A stretch of 64,000 nt of DNA from Mobula hypostoma (GCF_963921235.1 NC_086120.1:26598001-26662000); one strand, 5' to 3'; shown: positions 13,430 through 56,511, counted from the first letter of the stretch. Notes: a model not told the origin generated them from the sequence alone. Made by a program: numbers and translations.

Positions 13430-13880
13430 TGGGTTTCATCTCCTAAGTTACAGAGAAAGATTGAACAAGTTGGGTCTTTATTCTTTGGAGCATAGAAGGT
13501 TGAGGGGGGACTTGATAGAGGTGTTTAAAATTATGAGAGGGATAGATAGAGTTGATGTGGATAGGCTTTTTCCATTGAGAATGAGGGAGATTCAAACAAG
13601 AGGACATGAGTTGAGAGTTAAAGGGCAAAAGTTTAGGGCTAACATGAGGGGGAACTTCTTTACTCAGAGAGTGGTAGCTGTGTGGAACGAGCTTCCAGCA
13701 GAAGTGGTTGAGGCAGGTTGGATGTTGCCTTTTAAAGTTAAATTAGATAGATATATGGACAGGAAAGGAATGGAGGGTTATGGACTGAGTGCAGGTTGGT
13801 GGGACTAGGTGAGAGTAAAAATTCGGCACGGACTAGAAGGGCCGAGATGGCCTGTTTCCATGCTGTAATTGTTATATTAT
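13430..13880 (+). mobile_element. Young 5'-truncated CR1 3' end
   Basis: LGLYSLEHRRLRGDLIEVFKIM...AGWWD*, nearly identical to the 3' end of the element at 41705-45530. Confidence 0.9.
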
Positions 13881-15050: not shown

Positions 15051-16107
15051 TTTCTTTTTCAATATTTTTATTAATTACTTGCACAGACGAATACAAAATA
15101 CATAATGATATTATGGAAACAGAAACAAGATTGAATTTCCCCATAACTATGTATAGTAAATTAACCATAATATTGAAAAGGTATATTTTATTCTAATCTA
15201 AAGCAAAATCAAAACCCCATAACAAAACAAAAAAAAAGAGAAAGGGGAAAAAAACAGCTGTTTGGTCAAAAGAAAAGAAAATCTCTGACATATAGTCGTA
15301 AATTCAAACATATAATAGCCGTCATCATTGCTGAACAAATCGAAAATTGTGAAAGTAGTTCCAAAAAGGTCCCCATACTGTGAAAAAATCTTGTCTAGGT
15401 ATGGAAATAGAACACCTAATCTTCTCTAGATTTAAACATGACATAACATCAATCAACCAATGGGCACGAGTAGGCGGAGTGGCATCCTTCCATTTAAGCA
15501 ACAACTCTTCTGGCTAAAAGAGAAATAAAAGCCAAAAAATGCAAATCATTCGGCTTAAGAGTAAAATCATTTCCTCCAACAATGCCAAATAAGGCAGTCA
15601 GAGGGTTGGGTTTAAAGTTTACTTTAAAAAGTTCTGAGAAAGTTTCAAATACTTCTTTCCAAAATTTATCAAGCCGTGAGCAGGACCAAAACATATGAAT
15701 TAAAGAGGCCTCTTTGACATTACACCTATTACAGTATGGAGAAAAATCTGAGTAAAAACGAGAGAGCTTATCTTTAGTCATGTAGGCTATATGAACCACT
15801 TTAAATTGTAGAAGAGAGTGACGTGCACATGACGAAGAGGTGTGAACAAGTTTAAAAATTCCATTCCAAGTATCCTCATCAATTGAAATCTGTAGGTCTT
15901 GTTCCCAGAGGTTTTTAATTTTGTTTAACGGAATACTTCTCATTCCCAACAACATACAATAAATATTAGAAATAGATCCATTATGAAAAGGTTTCAAAGT
16001 AAAAATTGTATCAATTAAATTCTTATCTGGACGTTTAGGAAATGTATGAAGTTGACACAATAAGTCTCTAATTTGTAAATATCTAAAAAAGTGAGCTTTA
16101 CAAAGAT
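15051..16107 (-). mobile_element. L1/Tx1-clade LINE 3' fragment
   Basis: LQFKVVH...YCNRCNVKEASLIHMFWSC is the L1-type C-terminal CCHC domain. A-rich tail on the - strand. Confidence 0.8.
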
Positions 16108-18240: not shown

Positions 18241-18444
18241 ATGGCGGCGGCAGCGGTTTCCGGTTGGGTACACGGTGCCGAGTTGCCTCTCCCTGATGGG
18301 CTCTCACTTACACTCCGTGAGGCGCTGCTCAAGGTTCTGGAAAATCGGCCCGAAGACCCCGTTTCCTTCCTGGGTGAATACTTCCAAAACCTAGCGGTGG
18401 CTTCCGAAGGAACAGCGGAGAAACCGGTTCCGAGGCAACAGGAG
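18241..18444 (+). CDS. TPGS1: Tubulin polyglutamylase complex subunit 1, exon 1
   Basis: Strong Kozak aagATGG. LREALLKVLENRPEDPVSFLGEYF is the RIIa/DPY30-like docking motif of TPGS1. Donor GAG|GTAACC, phase 0. Confidence 0.9.
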
Positions 18445-18540
18445 GTAACCAGGCGACGGGGTCGTGATCAGGCTAACCCTCACGCAGCAGAAGGGTCGTG
18501 TTCGATCCTCGACCCAAGAACCATCCCTCAATCTCCGTAC

Positions 18541-18660
18541 CTCCTCCCTCCCTCCCTCCCCCCTCCCCCCCGTTCTCCTCCCCTTTCCCCTCCCCCATTC
18601 CCCTCCCCCCCGTTTCCTCCCCTTTCCCCTCCCCCATTCCCCTCCCCCATTCGCCTCTAC
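18541..18660. repeat. C-rich polypyrimidine tandem repeat in the TPGS1 intron
   Basis: Repeated ctcccctttcccctcccccattcccctccccc, giving G-runs on the - strand. Confidence 0.8.
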
Positions 18661-19221
18661 CTGTCTTCCCTCCTACCCCAACCGCTCGTCACTCCATCTG
18701 AGGCCCTTCTGCTATTGACACACTCTGCGGACACCCTCTCCTTTTCAATACACCTTTCAAAACGACACTGTTTTTAAGATTCCAGAACATTATTTCCATG
18801 AAAAGAATCCCCAGTTTAAGGACTTGCAGCACAAAACTGGCCTTACCAACCAAAATGCTTATTTATACTGATCTCATATAGCCACATTTGCTCGAGAGTT
18901 TCTATTCCTTGGCAATGTAGGCACTTTCAGCACATTACAGCAACGTAGAGGTCCTTTTAACCTACTCTTAGATCAACCTAACCCTTCTCCCCTACATAGC
19001 GCACCAGTTTTCTATCATCCGTGTGCTGTTTAAATGTGAGAGTGCTTGCCTCCATGGTGCCCTCTCACAAATTCCGGCTGCGCTCTGTGTTCATTTTCAG
19101 GTTCCTTTCCTCTTCTTGAGGGAAAGCAGGTGCCTGTTGACGTCTTGGAAGAGAAGGTTGATGAATGAAAAGAGGAGAGTTGGGTAGGAGACTAACCAAG
19201 TTTGTTTTGGTCTCCCAACAG

Positions 19222-19800
19222 GAGCAGATTTCCAGTGCCCTTAAACAGCTACTGCTCTGTCACTACAGCAGACCAGCCTTCAGCAGGAATACAGCCCTGG
19301 CTTTCCAGACCCTAAGCTGCCCCACAGACAGGAGGAAAAAGCCTGGTCTCAAGGGCAGAGTTTACACTGAGCTCTTAAGGCAGATCTGTGGAAGTGCAGG
19401 CACTTCCTCCTGCTCCCTGCTCGACAAATTGCGATGCTGGGACCACGAGGCGGTTCCTTTCAGCGTCTTCCGACACGGAGTGCTCACTTGCTTTGTCTTC
19501 CTGGACTTTGTGGAGATTTCCGGGAGGCTATTTGAGGTGGTGGCAGAGTCTGGGGAGGCCAGTCGGACAGTGTGTCAGGCTCTGCTCGAGGCTCTGCAGG
19601 ACGCTCTGAGTGTTAGTGGGTCAGCCAGTGGCAATGGGTGTCTGGACGCTGCCTCAAAACTCAGCCCTGACCAGCTTGGGATGACCATGGAACAGGCAAT
19701 GAGGCTACGGAGAAATGAAACCACCCCACCGATGACACAGGAGGAGTTCACTCAGCTCACTGCTCCTCTCTTTATTCAAAGAGTGAAGCCCATGTGTTGA
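19222..19800 (+). CDS. TPGS1: Tubulin polyglutamylase complex subunit 1, exon 2 (protein ~260 aa)
   Basis: CAG acceptor at 19219-19221, in frame. RKKPGLKGRVYTELLRQIC and CWDHEAVPFSVFRHGVLTCFVFLDF match TPGS1. Stop TGA at 19798-19800. Confidence 0.92.
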   Translation, partial: EQISSALKQLLLCHYSRPAFSRNTALAFQTLSCPTDRRKKPGLKGRVYTELLRQICGSAGTSSCSLLDKLRCWDHEAVPFSVFRHGVLTCFVFLDFVEISGRLFEVVAESGEASRTVCQALLEALQDALSVSGSASGNGCLDAASKLSPDQLGMTMEQAMRLRRNETTPPMTQEEFTQLTAPLFIQRVKPMC

Positions 19801-20760: not shown

Positions 20761-22033
20761 ATACACATAAATACCCCAACCCAATGCTATTGATAGGGAC
20801 CAGTTTCAAAACTGCCCCTGATCTAGTTGGACTGGATAGGGGCTGGGAGCAGGAAGCCACCTCAATGTGGGGGAACACTGGCTCATATGGTTTTCTTCCA
20901 TTCCAAGGCACGGAGTATGATTCTGCCTGTGTGGGTGCATGACAGTGATATGACAGCATAACCTTGTGAATATTACCACATGAAAGCAAGTTACTGAACT
21001 GCAGGACACACCTTGCTTGTCTGGCTGGATCTTTATATCAAGGACTGTTGATTGGTTGTAACTTGTTTTATACCAGTGTTGCATAAAGGACTCTTGCGTA
21101 TTGTGAGATTAAATTAAACAAATGTTATTGACATTTCCTGTTTACTCTCTGTTTTGGACCCATTATTTTTGACTGTTAATATAAACCTGCCCCCAAAGGT
21201 ACCACCTCCGATCGATCTGGAATTCTCAATTGCCCTTGGTTAGACAGTGAGCACGGACAGGGTGTCAGACCTTGATGTGAGGTGACGGCGTCATAGCACC
21301 ACTTTCTTTCCTCAGCCAAGTGCCAAAGTCCTCGGACATCCGTCAGGCCACCGGCCTGGCTGTCATTATTTATTCTTGGTGAAGTACACCAATGCTCTTG
21401 GACTTCCCTCATGGGGTCACTGGAACCCCTATGAGGGTTGTGGAGTGGAGGAAAGAGGCCTGAAACCTGTGAGTGTTGCCATCACAGGGACACTGGTACT
21501 TAGAGCTCTTACAGTAACTCCACTGTCAGCCTGCCACTAAAAACAATCAGTATCAAAGAAGGAATTTTGTAACAGCAGGCCATTCACCCCCTAGAGTCTT
21601 CTACCATTCAACAAGATCAGAGGCCTAACTCCATTTCCATGTTATCAAAAACCTGTCATTTAACAATGATCTGGCATGAATTATTGTTTGTGAATGAGTG
21701 TTACAAAACTCTGCGTTCCTCAGTGAGTAGAAATGTTTTCAAAGTTTAATTATGAAAGGCCTATCAATTTGGGGAAAATACCTTGTTTTGGATTCCCCAA
21801 GCAGAAGAAATAGAATCTGTCAGTTCCTCTTAATATCTTGAAAACCTTGATCAAATCACCAGTTAGCCTTCTAAATCCATGGAGGAAAACCCTTCTTTGT
21901 GGAACCTCGCTTCACATTTAACCCTTTGGAGTCCAGGGATCATTCTGATAAACCTGCTTTGCACTCTCTCCTGTCGAGTAAGAGAATTAGAAATCTTTTC
22001 TCAATCTGCAGTGAAACAATGTAAAGCAGAGAT

Positions 22034-22039
22034 TTTATT
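22034..22039 (-). terminator. Candidate poly(A) signal of the orphan gene
   Basis: AATAAA on the - strand, ~290 nt downstream of the stop at 22325. Confidence 0.45.
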
Positions 22040-22324
22040 CAGGATGGGTGAAGGCGAACAGTTTGCAAGAGGAATCCTCTTGTCAGAGTACTGACTGAAT
22101 TAGTTGCTGCTGCCAGATTGGCGGCATCTGAAGTTGCCTGCAAAGGGAGCTCAGAACTGAGGTTAATTTTTTTGAACCCAAAATTGCTTTTATATATTCA
22201 ACTTAGATATACAGGGCTCCATTGACTTGCATTCTCTATGAAATATCTTGATTTTCGTTTTCAAAACAGTGATGGAATTCTAGACCTTGTAATCAACACT
22301 GACCAAGGGTATTTGGAATAGAGT

Positions 22325-23341
22325 TTACTTCTGCTTTTCCGCCAAGACTTCAAAAAATCGTTTGAGAGACTCCTTTCCCCGCCTTGTAGGTCTCAGACGA
22401 ATGGTGCTTCCCCGTGAACGGTACCCTCTGAGGTGAATTTTCCTGGATTCAGGCCTGACTCTACCCCGAAGTGAGGTTGGTGACTTCGGAATGTCCCTGG
22501 CACGTACTCTAGAAAGGTCAGCCATTCCCACTGGGAAGTTTTGGAATGTTTGGTTATGAGCCATGTCCCTGGGATGCACTCTGGAAATGTCAGCCATTCC
22601 CACTGGGAAAATTTGCAGTGTTTGGTTGTGTAGCATATCCCTGGCATGCACTCTAGAAACATCAGCCACCGGGAAGTTCTGGAAGGATTGGTTATGAAGG
22701 TTGTCTCTGGCAGGCACTCTAGAAGCATCAGCGTTTCCCGCTGGGAAGTTTTGGAATGACTGGTTTTGAGGGTTCTCTCTCGCAGGCACTCTAGAAGCAT
22801 CAGACATTCCCCCTGGGAAGTTTTGGAATGACTGGTTTTGAGGGTTGTCCCTAGCATGCGCTCTAGAAGCATCAGCCATTCCAGGTAGGAAGTTCTGGAA
22901 TGATTGGTTGAAGGAGATGTCCCTGGGATGCACTCTAGAAACGTCAGCCATTCCCATTGGGAAGTTCTGGAATGTTTGGTTGAAGGAGATGTCCCTGGGA
23001 TGCACTCTAGAAATGTCAGCCATTCCCACCTGGAAATTTTGAAATGTTTGGTCGAGGTCATCGAATTTCATCGAAATCTCTCCTGCCATGGAGGCCCTGC
23101 GTGTTGGGTTGCGTGCCTGGACCAGGGTCGTGGCCATGATAGGATACATGTCATCATCTGAGGGTAATTCGAAGGAGGAGGAATCCATATCATACTGGTA
23201 GAAACCGTTTTCTTCATCCGCCCCTAGGCCGAATGAAGCAAGGATCCTGTCCGCAGCCCATTCAAACCCAGCCAAGAATATATTGAAAACAAATATCCTC
23301 CAGTATGGGAACAGCAGTGTTAACAGTTCCCACAAAGCCAT
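22325..23341 (-). CDS. Uncharacterised 338-aa protein: hydrophobic N-terminus, acidic linker, 8 x 24-aa tandem repeats, Arg-rich tail
   Basis: Longest non-TE ORF in the window, with strong Kozak gaaATGG. It stays open through 96 unique codons before and 52 after the array. The only indel in the array is an in-frame 6 nt, and units show synonymous variation (CAA/CAG, TCA/TCC). Confidence 0.75.
   Translation of the reverse strand: MALWELLTLLFPYWRIFVFNIFLAGFEWAADRILASFGLGADEENGFYQYDMDSSSFELPSDDDMYPIMATTLVQARNPTRRASMAGEISMKFDDLDQTFQNFQVGMADISRVHPRDISFNQTFQNFPMGMADVSRVHPRDISFNQSFQNFLPGMADASRAHARDNPQNQSFQNFPGGMSDASRVPARENPQNQSFQNFPAGNADASRVPARDNLHNQSFQNFPVADVSRVHARDMLHNQTLQIFPVGMADISRVHPRDMAHNQTFQNFPVGMADLSRVRARDIPKSPTSLRGRVRPESRKIHLRGYRSRGSTIRLRPTRRGKESLKRFFEVLAEKQK
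22484..23053 (-). repeat. Coding tandem array, 8 units of 72 nt (unit 6 is 66 nt)
   Basis: Consensus NQ(T/S)FQNFPxGMADxSRVHxRDxxx, residues 97-286. Confidence 0.95.
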
Positions 23342-24246
23342 TTCCTGTTTTCACCATCCATGCGTCTGAGGTGCCCTGGTCCACTGGACCTCTTTGAAAA
23401 ACTGAACAAGATGAATTGAAGTAACTTGAGCTTGAATGTAGATGGCTTGCTTTAGTCATAATGTTGGTGTGATGTCGTACAAGGCCAAATCATTGCGGGG
23501 GAGGGCAGCAGAAACTGTGATATCTTCATTGCAAACCTTGTGTCAGTTCAGAAATATGGTAAACAGAATGTCCAGGTTCTTATTGGAGCTGGTGACAGCA
23601 ACATGAGGACAGTGTCTCCGCAATTCCCTACATGTATTGGAATACTTTGCACTTCTTGAGGCGGATTATAAACACAGCAGAACTGACATAAGAAATTGGG
23701 CAACGAGCAAATTCACATATCAATTCCAACTTTATCTTACTCCCAGGCATCTGTTCTATATATATAAAAAAAATGCTCTAAAAGGATTTGGTTTCAGCCT
23801 GCAACTCGCGCAATTATTCCAAATATAAAGTTGCGTGGATCACTCATCAGTTAAATTCTATCCTAAAATTCAATCCATGGTATTTGAATGTTCATATTAA
23901 AAAAAACAGCCAAATGTATTTGATATTCCACTCCATAAAACCCTACATCAATCTTTTAAGGTTTGAAGATAATTTGCTTCCATTCCATATCCTTATATTC
24001 TTGAATGGTTGATGAGGCTAACCTCATTAGGATGCACAAAACTCTGTCACAATTGAAACAGGAAGTTTGCTTAGATGGTTTCCGCCTTCTGCAGTTTTCT
24101 TCTGTGCCCTCTCAATGATGAGTGCCAAGTTCTCAATACCATGCGAAGTACGTCATATCCATTTCAAGCAGTCATAGATCATGAATTGGTTGCATTTTTT
24201 GAAGAAGGCTTTAAGAACATCTTGAATTATTTTGTCCACTTGATAA

Positions 24247-28677: not shown

Positions 28678-29210
28678 CGTTTAAAGAAAACTACATGTCC
28701 CAGAATAAATCACGCGCTTTCAGGCATGTTCACTCGTTGCTGATAGTTATTGGTTTCCATAGAGCCTGCCGCTATTTGATTCGCTAGGGCACTAATGGCT
28801 CTATGATTGGTCACTTTGCCCTCCGCAATCTGATAGGGTACATGGCCCTTCTGATTTGATACAGTTGTTATTCTGCGTGGTGATTGGCTCTGTGTAGTGG
28901 TAATCTCTGATTGGACATATTATGATTTGCTACTTCGTTGCTGCGTGCCGATTGGCTGCCGCAGGTCACGGGGCATTGTACCCAGGCAGCGGCCGGACAG
29001 CGGCCTCAGCGCTACTCCACAGCGGGGCTCAAAGGGCCTCAAATTCGGCCTGCAGCCACTCAACGTCGGGGCTGAAGGGCCTGTTCTACGGCCTCTCAGC
29101 AACTCTGTAGCGGTGCCGAGCGGCTCCCCATACCGACGCTCTCAGTGCCTGGTTCCGGCCTCGCGTTTACCTCCTCCCCGGCGGTGCCGGGACCCGGGCC
29201 CCGGGCGGTC
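28678..29210. promoter_or_regulatory. CDC34 CpG-island promoter with a ZNF143/THAP11 motif and five CCAAT boxes
   Basis: ACTACATGTCCCAGAAT at 28690-28706 matches ACTAYRnnnCCCR. ATTGG at 28749, 28806, 28883, 28910 and 28951. CpG-rich 5' UTR. Confidence 0.75.
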
Positions 29211-29387
29211 ATGGCTCACCAGCAGACCAGCAGCTCCCAGAAGGCGCTGATGTTGGAGCTGAAGAGCCTGCAGGAGGAGCCAGTCGAGGGTTTCCGCATT
29301 ACCCTGGTCGACGAATCTGACCTGTATAATTGGGAGGTGGCAATCTTCGGGCCGCCCAACACGCATTATGAGGGTGGCTACTTCAAG
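29211..29387 (+). CDS. CDC34: Ubiquitin-conjugating enzyme E2 R (CDC34), exon 1
   Basis: MAHQQTSSSQKALMLELKSLQEEPVEGF...EGGYFK; donor AAG|GTAAGG; 177 nt. The symbol is assigned by synteny, as the sequence is UBE2R2-like. Confidence 0.9.
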
Positions 29388-31744
29388 GTAAGGCTGCAGA
29401 CACAACATGATGGGCCCAGCTTGGGGGAAGTGCACGAACTACCGGGAGTCGGTGTTGGGGTGGAATGGGGGTTGGAGTGGTGTGGAGAAAGGGGAAAAAC
29501 CCAGGGGCGGAAAGCTCCTTTGTCCCAGTCGGCGATGGAACAGGTCTGGGAGACTGTTCCGGTAGTTTAGTTCTGATTTCATCCCAACGGATGTTGTACA
29601 AGGTAATTGGGTCGAAACATTGCCCCTTGCCGCCCTCGAAATGAAGTTAAGAATGTCCCCTCTTTCTCCTTCCCCACCCCCATGAACAGCAGACTTGTGG
29701 CTCTCGTGATCCTTACGTGGGAGTGTGTGGGGTGGGGTTCTCGAATTGTTTTGGTCCAGGATGGGTTCGTATTGACAATGGGGTGGCGAGACGTGGGATC
29801 TGTAGATTCTGTGGCTGCTTTTGCTTAGTCTCTTCAGGAGTAATCTTTCTCAATGTCCCATACATATGGGAGAAGAGGTTTAAGTAGATACAAGAGGCTG
29901 CAGGTGTTGGAAGCTGAGAGTGGATCTGGTAGAGGACAGATAATTGAGAGTATAAATATTATGAAACACGATGTGAATACAATTCGGTCACTTTAATTTT
30001 GGAGTACTGGTCTGGGGAGCAGTTCCCTGATTCTTAGTTTGTAGTACACAGTAAGTATGAGCCGCTCACTGGCCATTATTCCAGCTGTGTGATGGCGAGA
30101 AACATGCTCAAATTGTGCACTGGTGCCTTTGTGTTAAATGGCCTTTAGGTTGGTTAGCTGCACAGCTTAGCTGTTGACTGTCAATGGATTGCTTCTTAAG
30201 TCTATTTGGAGTTGCCAGCAGTGGCAGGGTGACCACTTGTTGACATACTAGTGCCTTGCTGTTTTTGTGGTTTTTTCTTTGTTAAATGCTTCTAATCTTT
30301 CCCAGCCCAAATTCTGGTTTTGAATGTCCTTGATTTTAATGTTGCTACCCACTGGCAATTTAAACCCTTTTTAAGACTTTGTCTTTGACATTGATAAGTC
30401 TTTGGCATGTGATCTGGTTTTTTAAATTCATTGAATACTTTGGTATCATGTTCTAATTGATAACGCTCCTGTGGAGAAGCAGGGTTGTTTCATTACTCTT
30501 GCTGAGTGACATTCAGAAACTGAGGTTAGTAAATGGCAGTGTGCCATTTACAAAAGGGAGTTATCTTAAATGTATCTCCATTGTGCTTGTATCAAGGGTA
30601 GGATGTGGTGATACGGTCGATAAATTGGTGCCAGTTATCACAGTTGCACAGTGGAAAATGGAAGATTGGGCCTGTGAGCTTCAGGGAGTTGATGCACTGC
30701 CACGTGTGGAGTCTGTGAGGAGTACTTGCAGTGTTCAGGTCAGCAATTGTCTTCAGACAGGTGAAGGTGGGAACAAAGAACAGTGTGTCATGGTTACTGT
30801 AGTCCTGTAGATTTAAGTCCTTGTGGCTGGAAGTAGAGGGAGTGAGTGAATATTTTCAAAGTAGGTATGTAAATTGCCCCTCTGAATTAAGCTTTAAGCG
30901 GCTGGCACTGGAAAACTTAGAAGTTCTACGGTGCATTGCACACCCTGGGTTTAGCCAGCCTGCCTGTAGTAATTCACACGAGCATCAATGTGCTGTGTGA
31001 ACAAAGTCACCAGAGAGTACTGGTATATGTCTCTGAATTCGACAAAATATCACAAAGGAGCTGACAGCCTTTGGAGCAAGGGGTCTGCCTGGCCCAACAC
31101 TATATGATACTTTGTATGCTAAAAATCAAAGGTCAATTCCATATTTACAATCCTTCTTTTGAACTACATGTAAACGTTTAAAACACCTGGATCTTCCAGC
31201 CAGCACACCTCCCTGTTTGCACCTATGTTACAGACATCAAATTACACAAAAGTACCGGATTTAAATCAGCATTGTCTGTTCTTCCAATTTAACTTGGTTC
31301 ACAGGAGCCCATTGCTCAGAGTTGCATTTTAGGCTCGATCCACAGTTCATATTTGAGTCTGAAGGCTAGTGGCTGAAGTTAGTTATTTGCTACATGTGCT
31401 AACCGCCCAAAGGTTGCTCTAACAGTGTGTAGTTTTGATCAGCTCACCAGCAAGTGGAGTTAGTCTGGAGCGCTCTTGCTGCTTTCAAGTTGGACAGCTC
31501 ATCCTCTTAGCTTCTGTAACCGTGTTTCCCTCATTGCTGCCCATACTATAGTGATGCACTCCTGCCATTTTGTGTGGTGATCTTCAATATTCTCCAGCTG
31601 AGTCATTGCACATGAACCACGGCAATACATGTGACCGATTCGGGTAAGGGTTCTCTGGGGGTGGTCAAAGTGATTAACGTGGTTCAGGGCTGAATATGAG
31701 GTTTCTGCTCTCAGCCCCTTAACAGCTTGCTTGCTCCCTGCCAG

Positions 31745-41704: not shown

Positions 41705-44700
41705 TTAACCATATAACAATTACAGCACGGAAACAGGCCATCTCGGCCCTTCTTGTCCATGCCAAACTCTTACTTCCACCTAGTCCCACCGACCTGCACT
41801 CAGCCCATAACCCTCCATTCCTTTCCTGTCCGTATATCTATCCAATTTAAATGACAACATCAAACCTGTCTCAACCACTTCTGCTGGAAGCTTGTTCCAC
41901 ACAGCTACCACTCTCTGAGTAAAGAAGTTCCCCCTCATGTTATTCCTAAACTTTTGCCCCTTAACTCTCAACTCATGTTCTCTTGTTTGAATCTCCCCCA
42001 TTCTCAATGGAAAAAGCCTATCCATGTCAACTCTATCAATCCCCCTCATAATTTTAAACACCTCTATCAAGTCCCCCCTCAACCTTCTATGCTCCAAAGA
42101 ATAAAGACCTAACTTATTCAACCTTTCTCTGTAACTTAGGAAATGAAAACCAGGCAACATTTTAGTAAACCTCCTCTGTACTCTCTCCATTTTATTGACA
42201 TTTTTCCTATAATTCAGTGACCAGAACTGTATACAATACTCCAAATTTGGCCTCACCAATGCCTTATACAATTTCAACATTACATCCCAACTCCTATTAC
42301 TCAATGCTCTGATCTATAAAGACCAGCATACCAAAAGCTTTCTTCACCATCCTATCCACATGAGATTCCACCTTCAGGGAACTATGCACCATTATTCCTG
42401 GATCCCTCTGTTCTACTGCATTCTTCAATGCCCTACCATTTACCATGTATGTCCTATTTTGATTAGTCCTACCACAATATAACACCTCACATTTATCAGC
42501 TTTAAACTTAATTTGCCATCTTTCAGCCCGCTCTTCTAAGTGGTGTAAATCTCTCTGCAAGCTTTGAAAACCTACTTCATTATCCACATCTGCATACTTA
42601 CTCATCCAATTTACCACCCCATCATCCAGATCATTAATATATATGACAAACAACATTGGACACAGTACAGATCCCTGAGGCACACCACTAGACACTGTCC
42701 TCCAATCTGACTCACAGTTATCCACCACTACCCTCTGGCGTCTCCCATCCAGCCACTGCTGAATCCATTTTACTACTTCGATATTAATGCCTAACGATTG
42801 AACCTTCCTAACTAACTTTCTGTGTGGAACCTTGTCAAAGGCCTTACTGAAGTCCATATAGATAATGTCTGCCACTTTACCCTCGTCAACTTTCCTAGTA
42901 ACCTCAACAAAGAATTTAATAAGATTTGTCAAACATGACCTTCCACGCACAAATCCATGTTGACGGTTCCTAATCAGACCCTGTCTATCCATATAATTAT
43001 ATATACCATCTCTAACAATACTTTCCATCAATTTACCCATCACTGATTCAAACTCACAGGCCAGTAATTGCTAGGTTTACTCTTAGAACCCTTTTTAAAC
43101 AATGGAACAACATGAGCAATACGCCAATCCTCCAGCACCATCCCTGTTTCTAATGACATTTGAAATATTTCTGTAGGAGCCCCTGCTATTTCCACACTAA
43201 CTTCCCTCAAAGTCCTAGGGAATATCTTGTCAGGACCCATAGACTTATCTACTTTTATATTCCTTAAAAGCGCCAGTACTTCCTCTTCCTTAATCATCAT
43301 ACTTTCTATAACTACCCTTCTTGTTTCTTTTACCTTACACAATTCAATATCCTTATCCTTAGTGAATACCGAAGAAAAGAAATTATTCAAAATCTTCCCC
43401 CATCTCTTTTGGCTCTGCACATAGCCATCCACTCTGATTCTCTAAGGGACCAATTTTATCCCTCACTATTCTTTTGCTATTAATATAACTATAGAAACCC
43501 CTTGGATTTATTTTCACCTTACTTGCCAAAGCAGCCTCATATCTTCTTTTAGCTTTTCTAATTTCTTTCTTAAGATTCTTTTTACATTCTTTATATTCCT
43601 CGAGCACCTCATTTACTCCAAGCTGCCTATATTTATTGTAGATTCTTCTCTTTTTCCGAACCAAGTTTCCAATATCCCTTGAAAACCATGGCTCTCTCAA
43701 ACTTTTAACCTTTCTTTTCAACCTAACAGGAACATAAAGATCCTGTACCCTCAAAATTTCACCTTTAAATGACCTCCATTTCTCTATTGCATCCTTCCCT
43801 TAAAACAAATTGTTCCAATCCACTCCTAAATTCTTTTGCATCTCCTCAAAGTTGGCCTTTCTCCAATCAAAAATCTCAACCCTGGGTCCAGTTCTATCCT
43901 TCTCCATAATTATATTGAAATTAATCATATCGTGATCACTGGACCCGAAGTGCTCCCCAACACATACCTCCGTCACCTGCCCAATCTCATTCCCTAACAG
44001 GAGATCTAACACTGCCCCTTCTCTAGTTGGTAACTCTATGTATTACTGCAAAAAACTATCTTGCACACATTTTACAAACTCCAAACCATCCAGCCCTTTT
44101 ACAGAATGGGCTTCCCAGTCAATGTGTGGAAAATTAAAATCTCCCACAATCACAACCTTGTGCTTACTACAAATATCTGCTATCTCCTTACAAATTTGCT
44201 CCTCCAATTCTCACTCCCCATTAGGTGGTCTATAATACACCCCTATAAGCATCACTGCACCTTTCCCATTCCTCAATTCCACCCAAATAGCTCCCTGGAC
44301 GAGTCCACTAATCGATCCTGCCAGAGCACTGCTGTTATATTTTCTCTGACAAGCAAATGCAACACCTCCCCCTCTTGCCCCTCCAATTCTATCACACCTG
44401 AAGCAACGAAATCTAGGAATATTTAGTTGCCAATCACACCCCTCCTGCAACCATGTTTCACTAATAGCTACAACATCATATTTCCAGGTATCAATCCATG
44501 ATCTAAGCTCACCCACCTTTTTTACAATGCTCCTAGCATTAAAATAGATGCATTTAAGAAACTCTCCCTCTTACTCTCTGTTTATCCTTAATGGAGCAAA
44601 CAACTTTGTTTGCAAAGATCTTTTTCTTCCTTCTCCCCTACATCTTCGGTCTGAGTGCTCCTGATCTCTGTCCCCTGCCTATCCTCCCTCACACACTGTC

Positions 44701-55603: not shown

Positions 55604-56511
55604 CAGCCGGCCCTCCTTATCCGCAAGGGATTGGTTCCGGGACCCCTCGCGGATACCAAAAAACGCGGATGCTCAAGTCCCTTATTCAACCTGTTTAAAT
55701 GCGGTGGACCTTAGGACCCAGCGGAACCCCAGAACTTATTTAACCTGTCTCAGTGCCGTGGACATTAGGACCCGGCGGAGGAGCTCTGAATCCGCAGTGT
55801 TTCTGTTCTCGAAAATAATCACGATGCAATTTAAAATAAAGTGAAAATAATAAAGCGATCAGAAAGAGGTGAAACACCATCGGCCATTGGAAAGTCGGTC
55901 AATGATCGGAACAATTTTAAAGGATAAAGTGAGAAAGGGCCCTGCCCCGATGAAAGCTACAATTATTACTAAGCAACGCAGTGGTTTAATTATTGGGTTT
56001 TGGAGTTTTGGGTTTTTGATCCTTCACATCAACCTGGCAGGGATGGAGAGCGTGCCCGGGAGCGGTGTGTCACTGGATCGAACTCGGGAACTTCTGTTCT
56101 CGACCCGGCACTGAAACATACGTTTCTTAAGTGTTTTATATGCATAGAAAGGTAAAATATATACTATATACTAAGACAAACGTTTGACTAGCTGATGCTA
56201 AATAATATCGGATGTACCTGTTCTGACTTACTTAGTAAGAGAACTTCGTTTTTTTTTCGATCCCGATCCACGNNNNNNNNNNNNNNNNNNNNNNNNNNNN
56301 NNNNNNNNNNNNNNNNNNNNNNNNNNNNNNNNNNNNNNNNNNNNNNNNNNNNNNNNNNNNNNNNNNNNNNNNNNNNNNNNNNNNNNNNNNNNNNNNNNNN
56401 NNNNNNNNNNNNGCTCGAACAACAAGTGCTGGAAGAACACTTCCGGGTTTTCTCGATTTGCGGTTGGTTAAATTCGCGCATGCAGAACTCGCGGATAAGG
56501 AGGGCCAACTG
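55604..56511 (+). mobile_element. Tigger/pogo-like DNA transposon derivative spanning the gap
   Basis: 21-bp TIRs cagccggccctccttatccgc / gcggataaggagggccaactg and TA TSD. Transposase N-terminal remnant GTILKDK...PMKATIITKQRSGLI. Confidence 0.8.
56273..56412. other. Assembly gap (140 N)
   Basis: Run of n. Confidence 1.

Follow-up and report, generated by a model that had tools for sequence, protein, structure and literature searches.

Does the interval between TPGS1 and CDC34 in the devil ray Mobula hypostoma hold a protein-coding gene and, if so, what kind of protein would it make? The window analysed here, a 64,000-nucleotide stretch of DNA (GCF_963921235.1 NC_086120.1:26598001-26662000), had been read, from its letters alone, as carrying an intact, intronless ORF for a 338-aa tandem-repeat protein between these two genes. 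An intact ORF of that length was found on the minus strand, at 22325-23341, and profile matches to TPGS1_C (19228-19797 on the plus strand, E=3e-60) and to UQ_con place both flanking genes where the original prediction had put them.

18241..19800, plus strand: TPGS1, two coding exons; the upstream neighbour, on the opposite strand to the ORF
22325..23341, minus strand: complete CDS, with an ATG start and 338 codons plus stop; the coding part is a single exon
29211..29399, plus strand: CDC34 exon 1, the flanking gene, with the UQ_con match

The gene order in sharks and rays is SHC2, TPGS1, the gene of the 338-aa ORF (on the opposite strand) and CDC34. The window's TPGS1 shares 99.6% identity with the TPGS1 of Mobula hypostoma, as expected of devil-ray DNA. 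In the window a TGA stands in frame 12 nt before the ORF's ATG, and the two out-of-frame upstream ATGs given as a caveat in the original prediction are present, at -20 and -16, the one at -20 recurring in four of the five species examined. No second copy of the ORF was found in the window, and each orthologous locus holds one copy.

The gene tables of seven annotated elasmobranch assemblies (M. birostris, Hypanus, Hemitrygon, Pristis, Rhinoraja, Narcine and Chiloscyllium) list no protein gene at this spot, an absence that could reflect low or narrow expression. Pfam scans of the window protein (E<=10) and of five family members (E<=1) returned sub-threshold noise only, a PDB profile search gave no relative of the 338-aa protein, and Atlas searches reached scores of at most 0.68, with low recognition. 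The sub-threshold profile noise consisted of EAP30, Glyco_transf_7C and 11S globulin, and SUN1/MRP recurred in the Atlas searches at about 0.55, far under a useful level. The exact window, Chiloscyllium and Narcine proteins were absent from the assembly collection records; metagenome scans with peptide patterns, and with a 25-nt upstream block described below, gave no match; and a literature search on TPGS1 and CDC34 in elasmobranchs gave no useful result. The repeat had gone unrecognised in the first reading, and it matched nothing in Pfam or the PDB and no transposable element. An origin as a transposable element or a TE-derived ORF was rejected on the single syntenic copy per locus in all species and the absence of any Pfam domain.

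Orthologues in sharks and rays

An exhaustive phmmer search with the 338-aa protein found a single N-terminal relative, P0002 (E=6e-35), a skate protein of 165 aa encoded by a pair of 1485-bp Logan contigs that are almost identical. Its N-terminus and C-terminal ending are the same as in the window protein, and it has the RRAS sequence and one copy of the repeat motif; with P0002 as the query no protein beyond P0002 itself was retrieved. The contigs are 83% identical to the skate Rhinoraja and differ from each other by four SNPs, two of them in the CDS and both of these at third positions. Because they are colinear with the window across the 5' flank, CDS and 3' flank, extend beyond the poly(A) site and terminate in repeats, they look genomic. 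The other orthologues were fetched as DNA neighbouring relatives of TPGS1, which served as the anchor.

Rhinoraja longicauda (skate), L003:15166-15672: orthologue of 169 aa, one motif copy
Narcine bancroftii (electric ray), L004:17679-18161: orthologue of 161 aa, one motif copy
Chiloscyllium punctatum (bamboo shark), L005:17277-17765: orthologue of 163 aa, one motif copy
Pristis pectinata (sawfish), L006:14091-15026: orthologue of 312 aa, seven motif copies

At these TPGS1-anchored loci the ORF is intact, keeps the same orientation and lies 2-4 kb downstream of TPGS1, before CDC34. Six species were thus compared (Mobula, the P0002 skate, Rhinoraja, Narcine, Chiloscyllium and Pristis), from five orders; all six sequences begin MA[LF]W and end [RK]QK-stop. 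The orthologous ORFs at L001 and at L003-L006 share their start and end, and with the coding part a single exon this agrees with the intronless structure first proposed. The sense frame is the only one of the six frames that is open across all five species tested. A purine at -3 and a G at +4 occur in six of six species, so that the strong Kozak context claimed for Mobula is common to the family. Stops or frameshifts in relatives had been named as evidence that would count against the gene, and none is present in the five other elasmobranch orthologues.

The decisive evidence is that of intact orthologues, in the same place and orientation, in five other elasmobranchs, and on this comparative ground the ORF is confirmed as a real protein-coding gene and not a chance ORF. 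That the gene would be lineage-specific did not hold: it is found in one shark and in four batoid orders, and so is at least elasmobranch-wide. We consider it likely that the locus represents an unannotated protein-coding gene with no known relatives, compact and probably intronless, whose position is conserved in sharks and rays. Its ancestral product, as the alignment indicates, is a protein of about 160-170 aa with one motif copy of the form NQ[ST]F...G[MI]AD[IV][ST]R...RD, laid out as a hydrophobic N-terminal helix-Pro-helix, an acidic linker, RRAS, the single motif, an Arg/Lys-rich stretch and an amphipathic C-terminal helix ending in QK.

The 72-nt repeat array

The window protein carries the motif as a tandem array, and the eight 24-aa units claimed for it were recovered in protein register.

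22484..23053, minus strand: repeat array of eight in-frame 72-nt units, aa 97-286, consensus NQTFQNFPVGMADVSRVHARDIPH

TRF reports one array, at 22491-23052, with a period of 72, 7.9 copies and 81% matches. The units start at aa 97, 121, 145, 169, 193, 217, 239 and 263, and the sole indel is the expected one of 6 nt, an in-frame deletion that leaves unit 6 (22628-22693) with 22 aa. The seven positions listed as invariant (Q2, Q5, F7, D13, S15, R16 and R20) do not vary among the eight units. Pairs of Mobula units differ by 8-23 of 72 nt, with a diversity by codon position of 0.17/0.18/0.32; variable columns make up 17 of 24 third positions versus 19 of 48 first and second positions (Fisher p=0.023). 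That synonymous changes separate the units is borne out by these variable third positions and by a dN/dS among units of 0.33 in the ORF frame, versus 1.77 and 1.13 in the other frames. The openness of the array alone is weak evidence for coding, because a stop-less unit passes its openness on to its copies: among simulated arrays given the same number of random substitutions, 19% remained stop-free, and a second frame is open for 222 aa and other frames are partly open. The substitution pattern is the stronger evidence.

The Pristis array, in the same place, has seven units with 93% identity and a dN/dS among units of 0.48 in frame, the other frames of Mobula and Pristis giving 0.73-1.77. Both arrays open with a DQTFQNFQ unit. 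The first units of the two species (Mob1-Pri1) differ by 9 nt, Mob2-Pri2 and Mob8-Pri3 by 8 each and Mob7-Pri6 by 10, as against up to 23 for pairs within Mobula. Since several Mobula units are nearer to Pristis units than to their Mobula neighbours, the multi-unit array predates the split of Myliobatiformes and Rhinopristiformes; judged from these distances it is shared with Pristis, and so is old and not private to Mobula. The history read from these unit comparisons is an in-frame duplication of the 72-nt motif segment in the common ancestor of devil ray and sawfish, followed by turnover in each lineage, with a derived block in Mobula (units 3-5) and a recent homogenisation in Pristis (units 3-7). 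Copied seven to eight times in this clade, the motif doubled the length of the protein. Among the species with a single unit, Rhinoraja has the full 24-residue form, and the units of the P0002 skate and Narcine are 3 residues shorter.

Predicted architecture and mode of action

All four parts originally described (an aromatic/hydrophobic N-terminus, an acidic linker, the repeats and an Arg-rich tail) were found, and those outside the array are as follows.

23225..23341, minus strand: aa 1-39, the most conserved segment, a hydrophobic/aromatic helix-Pro12-helix and predicted membrane anchor
23090..23101, minus strand: R-R-A-S, aa 81-84, invariant in six of six species
22385..22483, minus strand: Arg/Lys-rich segment, aa 287-319; the last 60 residues of the protein have a net charge of +15
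22328..22384, minus strand: amphipathic C-terminal helix, aa 320-338, ending in an invariant Q-K

In the first segment 19 of 39 positions are invariant in the six species, and AF2 with the family alignment predicts helices at 2-10 and 14-36 (pLDDT ~80). With a hydrophobic moment of 0.03-0.12 this N-terminal helix is not amphipathic, and it is a probable membrane anchor on these predictions, one that is marginal for a transmembrane helix by hydropathy (maximum 19-residue Kyte-Doolittle 1.42-1.72) and contains Pro, Arg and Asn. The acidic linker (aa 40-80, net charge -8) precedes RRAS, a sequence that fits the consensus of basophilic kinases or else a dibasic processing site. The array (aa 97-286) is predicted to be disordered, with AF2 pLDDT of 33-49 and no secondary structure. 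A final helix is predicted at 320-337 (pLDDT ~79), with a hydrophobic moment of 0.37-0.52 in the five species computed, and R320, K323, Q337 and K338 are invariant across the six. Outside the N- and C-terminal helices all of the AF2 model is below pLDDT 50, and the protein has no cysteines.

As a tentative mechanism we suggest that the N-terminal helix would anchor the protein in a membrane and that the remainder would form a disordered, cytosol-facing chain, which phosphorylation at RRAS might regulate. The central motif would be a short linear binding or modification motif, amplification of which would multiply valency; selection could then act mainly on keeping the array and the frame and not on the exact flanking sequence. 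The mechanism as a whole, that of a membrane-anchored, disordered, phospho-regulated protein with a motif multiplied for valency, we hold to be plausible while still short of an even chance.

The same features can be arranged into a secretory protein. The N-terminal segment would then serve either as a long signal peptide or as a signal anchor (N-in, C-out) that stays uncleaved. The main part of the protein would lie in the lumen or outside the cell, N-glycosylated at NQ[ST], and RR|AS would be a convertase site at which cleavage would free a basic C-terminal product from an acidic pro-piece. By the charge-difference rule an acidic C-flank favours translocation of the C-terminal side, and here the residues that follow the hydrophobic segment carry a strong negative charge (net -4 to -8). 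Every batoid orthologue has an NQ[ST] sequon, which occurs in seven of the eight Mobula units and six of the seven in Pristis, and the fast evolution described below (omega ~1) is common in secreted proteins. The order of hydrophobic N-terminus, acidic stretch, RR and basic C-terminal half also resembles the layout of pro-peptide precursors, both antimicrobial and hormone. Unlike in such precursors, however, the N-terminus is highly conserved and charged in its core; its 39 residues are the best conserved part of the protein, which is unusual for a signal peptide, and at the most obvious site for cleavage a Trp occupies -3. The repeat units are not separated by dibasic sites, cysteines and a family match are lacking, and the sequon is not conserved family-wide, being NQT or NQS in batoids and QQA in the shark, which has no other sequon. 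We regard a secretory route, the strongest of the competing readings, and with it the release of a basic product at RR|AS, as unlikely, and keep the membrane-anchored, cytosol-facing protein as the preferred reading.

Flanking elements and the extent of the gene

Conservation extends beyond the CDS on both sides.

22034..22324, minus strand: probable 3' UTR, ending at AATAAA (22034-22039)
23342..23806, minus strand: conserved upstream region, the predicted promoter and 5' leader, colinear in batoids
23454..23478, minus strand: 25-nt block ACGACATCACACYAACATTRTGACT, kept in six of six species and unique in the window

The AATAAA expected about 290 nt downstream was measured at 286 nt past the stop, and each of the six species has the poly(A) motif CATCMTRAATAAA, 257-299 nt past the stop, with conserved blocks along the 3' flank. 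Over about 460 nt the upstream region matches skate and Narcine at 71-75% identity. Within it the 25-nt block lies at -137 from the ATG in five species and at -129 in Narcine; it showed no Rfam match, no RNA structure and no covariation, which points to a DNA-level regulatory or leader element. Two other readings of this conserved 5' block were rejected. A structured RNA was set aside on a consensus energy of -8.6 kcal/mol with no compensatory pairs or Rfam match, and a plus-strand exon or conserved uORF, an idea that arose from period-3 substitutions between the window and one skate, was set aside on a plus-frame stop in the skate and on the shark, which keeps neither frame. Colinear conservation upstream ends at about 23806, none being found between there and the CDC34 promoter, where conservation resumes, and this favours a compact gene with its own putative promoter.

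A spliced transcript would extend the gene further, if one or more non-coding leader exons, for example on the divergent side of the CDC34 CpG promoter some 5.5 kb upstream, were spliced to an acceptor some 50 nt ahead of the ATG. At about that distance the window does have a pyrimidine-rich tract and then an AG, batoids have an AG at the same alignment column, and the CDC34 promoter region is itself conserved (28846-29095). Against this, the 25-nt block at -137 and the roughly 460 nt of colinear upstream conservation would then be intronic, a less likely role for them than promoter or leader, and no conserved candidate exon was found between 23806 and 28846. Such a leader seems to us improbable, and the compact gene with its own promoter is the reading we retain.

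Selection on the coding sequence

The original prediction held the protein to be under purifying selection. This is true of the family as a whole, with omega 0.47, and of the array units, at 0.33, but not of the window's own branch, where omega is 1.01. Pairwise Nei-Gojobori dN/dS values range over 0.22-0.62, and the GY94+F3x4 model puts omega at 0.40 for five taxa (p=3.6e-13) and at 0.47 for six (LRT p=4.5e-11 versus neutrality), the window-Pristis pair being an outlier at 0.86. A two-ratio branch model was applied to six taxa and 164 codons, its one-ratio M0 fit reproducing the iqtree likelihood exactly. For the non-repeat parts it gives omega 1.01 in the array clade (window, Pristis and their stem) versus 0.36 elsewhere (p=2e-4), and again 1.01 for the window branch alone (p=0.003). 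The window-Pristis differences in the non-repeat CDS are spread over the codon positions as 29/33/31. With omega near 1 and so even a spread, constraint at the amino-acid level is not visible on the window's lineage outside the array.

These values raise the possibility that skates, electric rays and sharks have a working gene that is decaying in the array clade, the Mobula ORF being a neutrally evolving relic not yet broken. Its case consists of the omega of 1.01 on the window branch and across the whole array clade, the even spread over codon positions, a window-Pristis p-distance that is slightly greater in the CDS (0.189) than in the flanks (0.160), and the alteration in the window of residues that are otherwise invariant (D13Y, W25G, W26F, G30A and W87M). 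The frames are nonetheless full length in both Mobula and Pristis. The probability of no stop arising from 93 random substitutions in the non-repeat CDS is 0.0285; at the flank rate about six indels would be expected, and eight of the nine flank indels are not multiples of 3. The sole indel in the non-repeat alignment is one of 12 nt, in frame, and all alignment indels are multiples of 3. Taken together, the absence of a stop (0.0285) and of a frameshifting indel (~e^-5.3) has a chance of about 1e-4 for the non-repeat part alone. The low dN/dS of the array units (0.33 and 0.48) appears in frame only, and neither the Kozak context nor the -137 block nor the poly(A) motif has been lost. A relic is thus very unlikely. 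Maintenance in the array clade, as read from the alignments, is seen as an intact frame, in-frame indels and array-unit dN/dS and not as conservation of amino acids, and the Mobula protein reads as fast-evolving but maintained.

The remaining possibility, a chance ORF from a stop-less non-coding minisatellite (suggested by the simulated openness of the array and by the second open frame) or an LRR-like solenoid of 24-residue repeats (suggested by phmmer matches, down to E=1e-43, to LRR and other repeat proteins of 24-aa period), is refuted by comparison and structure prediction and retains next to no probability: the 151 codons outside the repeats are open and conserved in all six species, a single unit, which is all that four of them have, could not form a solenoid, no Pfam LRR model matches any of the five members scanned, the LxxLxL hydrophobic positions are missing from units 3-5, and the array is modelled at the low pLDDT given above with no secondary structure. 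All of the phmmer matches except P0002 start no earlier than residue 95, in the array or at most two residues away from it, and those to LRR and other repeat proteins were rejected as period-24 coincidences summed over many stretches. The likeness to LRR proteins (LRR_1, LRR_8) comprises the 24-residue period and a few aligned positions, D-[IV]-S...N...F, and it fails on profile match, unit number and predicted fold, so that the protein is not a member.

Implications and comparison with known systems

The motif amplification and the switch to omega ~1 fall at the same node, the ancestor of sawfish and devil rays. We may be looking at the founding member of an unseen vertebrate family, in which the two changes mark a reproductive, immune or other co-evolutionary conflict; we think this doubtful. 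Were it true, the copy number of the 24-residue motif would be a selected trait, and directly testable as such. The coincidence also raises the question of why, at that node, selection on the remaining sequence was relaxed or became positive. The species compared form a natural series, with one unit in skates, electric ray and shark, seven in sawfish and eight in devil ray, in which the effect on a disordered protein of multiplying a linear motif in frame can be studied. As the family has no structural or functional precedent, any function assigned to it would be new information. The locus adds a conserved protein-coding gene to the well-studied SHC2-TPGS1-CDC34 syntenic block, and indicates that short single-exon genes without homologues still escape annotation.

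Two known systems offer partial likenesses. Phospholamban (PF04272) is a small single-pass regulator with a cytosolic R-R-A-S kinase site. The ancestral form of the present protein is likewise small and has a single hydrophobic helix, and RRAS, which is invariant, lies in a flexible segment. It differs in that its helix is N-terminal (residues 1-39) and not C-terminal, in that the protein is three to six times longer, and in having no Pfam or PDB similarity; RRAS is all that is shared, and the likeness concerns a possible working mode only. The closest analogy, and an analogy only, is with genes of the involucrin type, in which a single coding exon has undergone a lineage-specific, in-frame tandem-repeat expansion within an older coding segment. 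Here too there is one coding exon, an ancestral non-repeat protein gained an internal array in multiples of a codon, the number and homogeneity of the units vary by lineage, and the flanks evolve fast. Unlike involucrin, to which it has no sequence relationship, the present protein has a 24-codon unit, a hydrophobic N-terminal helix and an Arg-rich tail.

Upstream ATG and antisense frame of the orphan gene

The main start of the orphan gene, an unannotated open reading frame of 338 codons between TPGS1 and CDC34, has a strong initiation context in all six species. An out-of-frame ATG at -20 (window 23322-23324) was seen in the window, in the second skate (contig L001), in Narcine bancroftii and in Chiloscyllium punctatum, and the fifth species compared, the skate Rhinoraja longicauda, has GTG in its place. 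This upstream ATG overlaps the main start. It may damp translation by leaky scanning, provided that the leader includes it.

In both skates (Rhinoraja locus, 15092-15700 (+), and the same interval of L001) an antisense frame is stop-free across the whole orphan gene, giving in Rhinoraja an open reading frame of 202 aa. In the other three species compared (the window, Narcine and the shark) the same frame is interrupted by 2-7 stops. The open antisense frame of the skates probably arises incidentally from codon usage rather than marking a second gene.

Flanking genes

Exon 1 of TPGS1 (window 18241-18444 (+)) contains an RIIa/Dpy-30-like docking motif that scores 21.9 and 21.7 bits, slightly below the Pfam thresholds, and that is noteworthy only because the adjacent orphan protein ends in a conserved, predicted amphipathic helix. 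In the CDC34 promoter region (window 28937-29013 (-)) there is a weak match to mir-4599 with E=0.086. It reaches 23 bits, where the gathering score is 100, and is almost certainly due to chance.

Repeats and sequence gap

Two reverse-transcriptase remnants of retrotransposons were identified in the window.

Reverse-transcriptase remnants of retrotransposons in the window
41780-43754 (-), reverse-transcriptase remnant; RVT_1, E=1.4e-24 for 42297-43043
15494-16060 (-), reverse-transcriptase remnant; zf-RVT, E=3e-6

A further fragment lies at 21850-21975 (-), immediately 3' of the poly(A) signal of the orphan gene. Compared by eye, it looks similar to the C-terminal tail encoded by the LINE-type open reading frames at 13461-13808 (+) and 41780-42304 (-), and part of it aligns with the Rhinoraja locus (window 21642-21947).

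The L001 contig, a 1485-bp Logan assembly product, carries inverted copies of a short element at its two ends (1-28 and 1458-1485), and the Rhinoraja locus has eight or more copies of this element within 21 kb. The element is an interspersed repeat of skates, and its presence at the contig ends explains why the contig stops where it does. A run of N at approximately 56260-56510 of the window appears as runs of X in the open reading frames.
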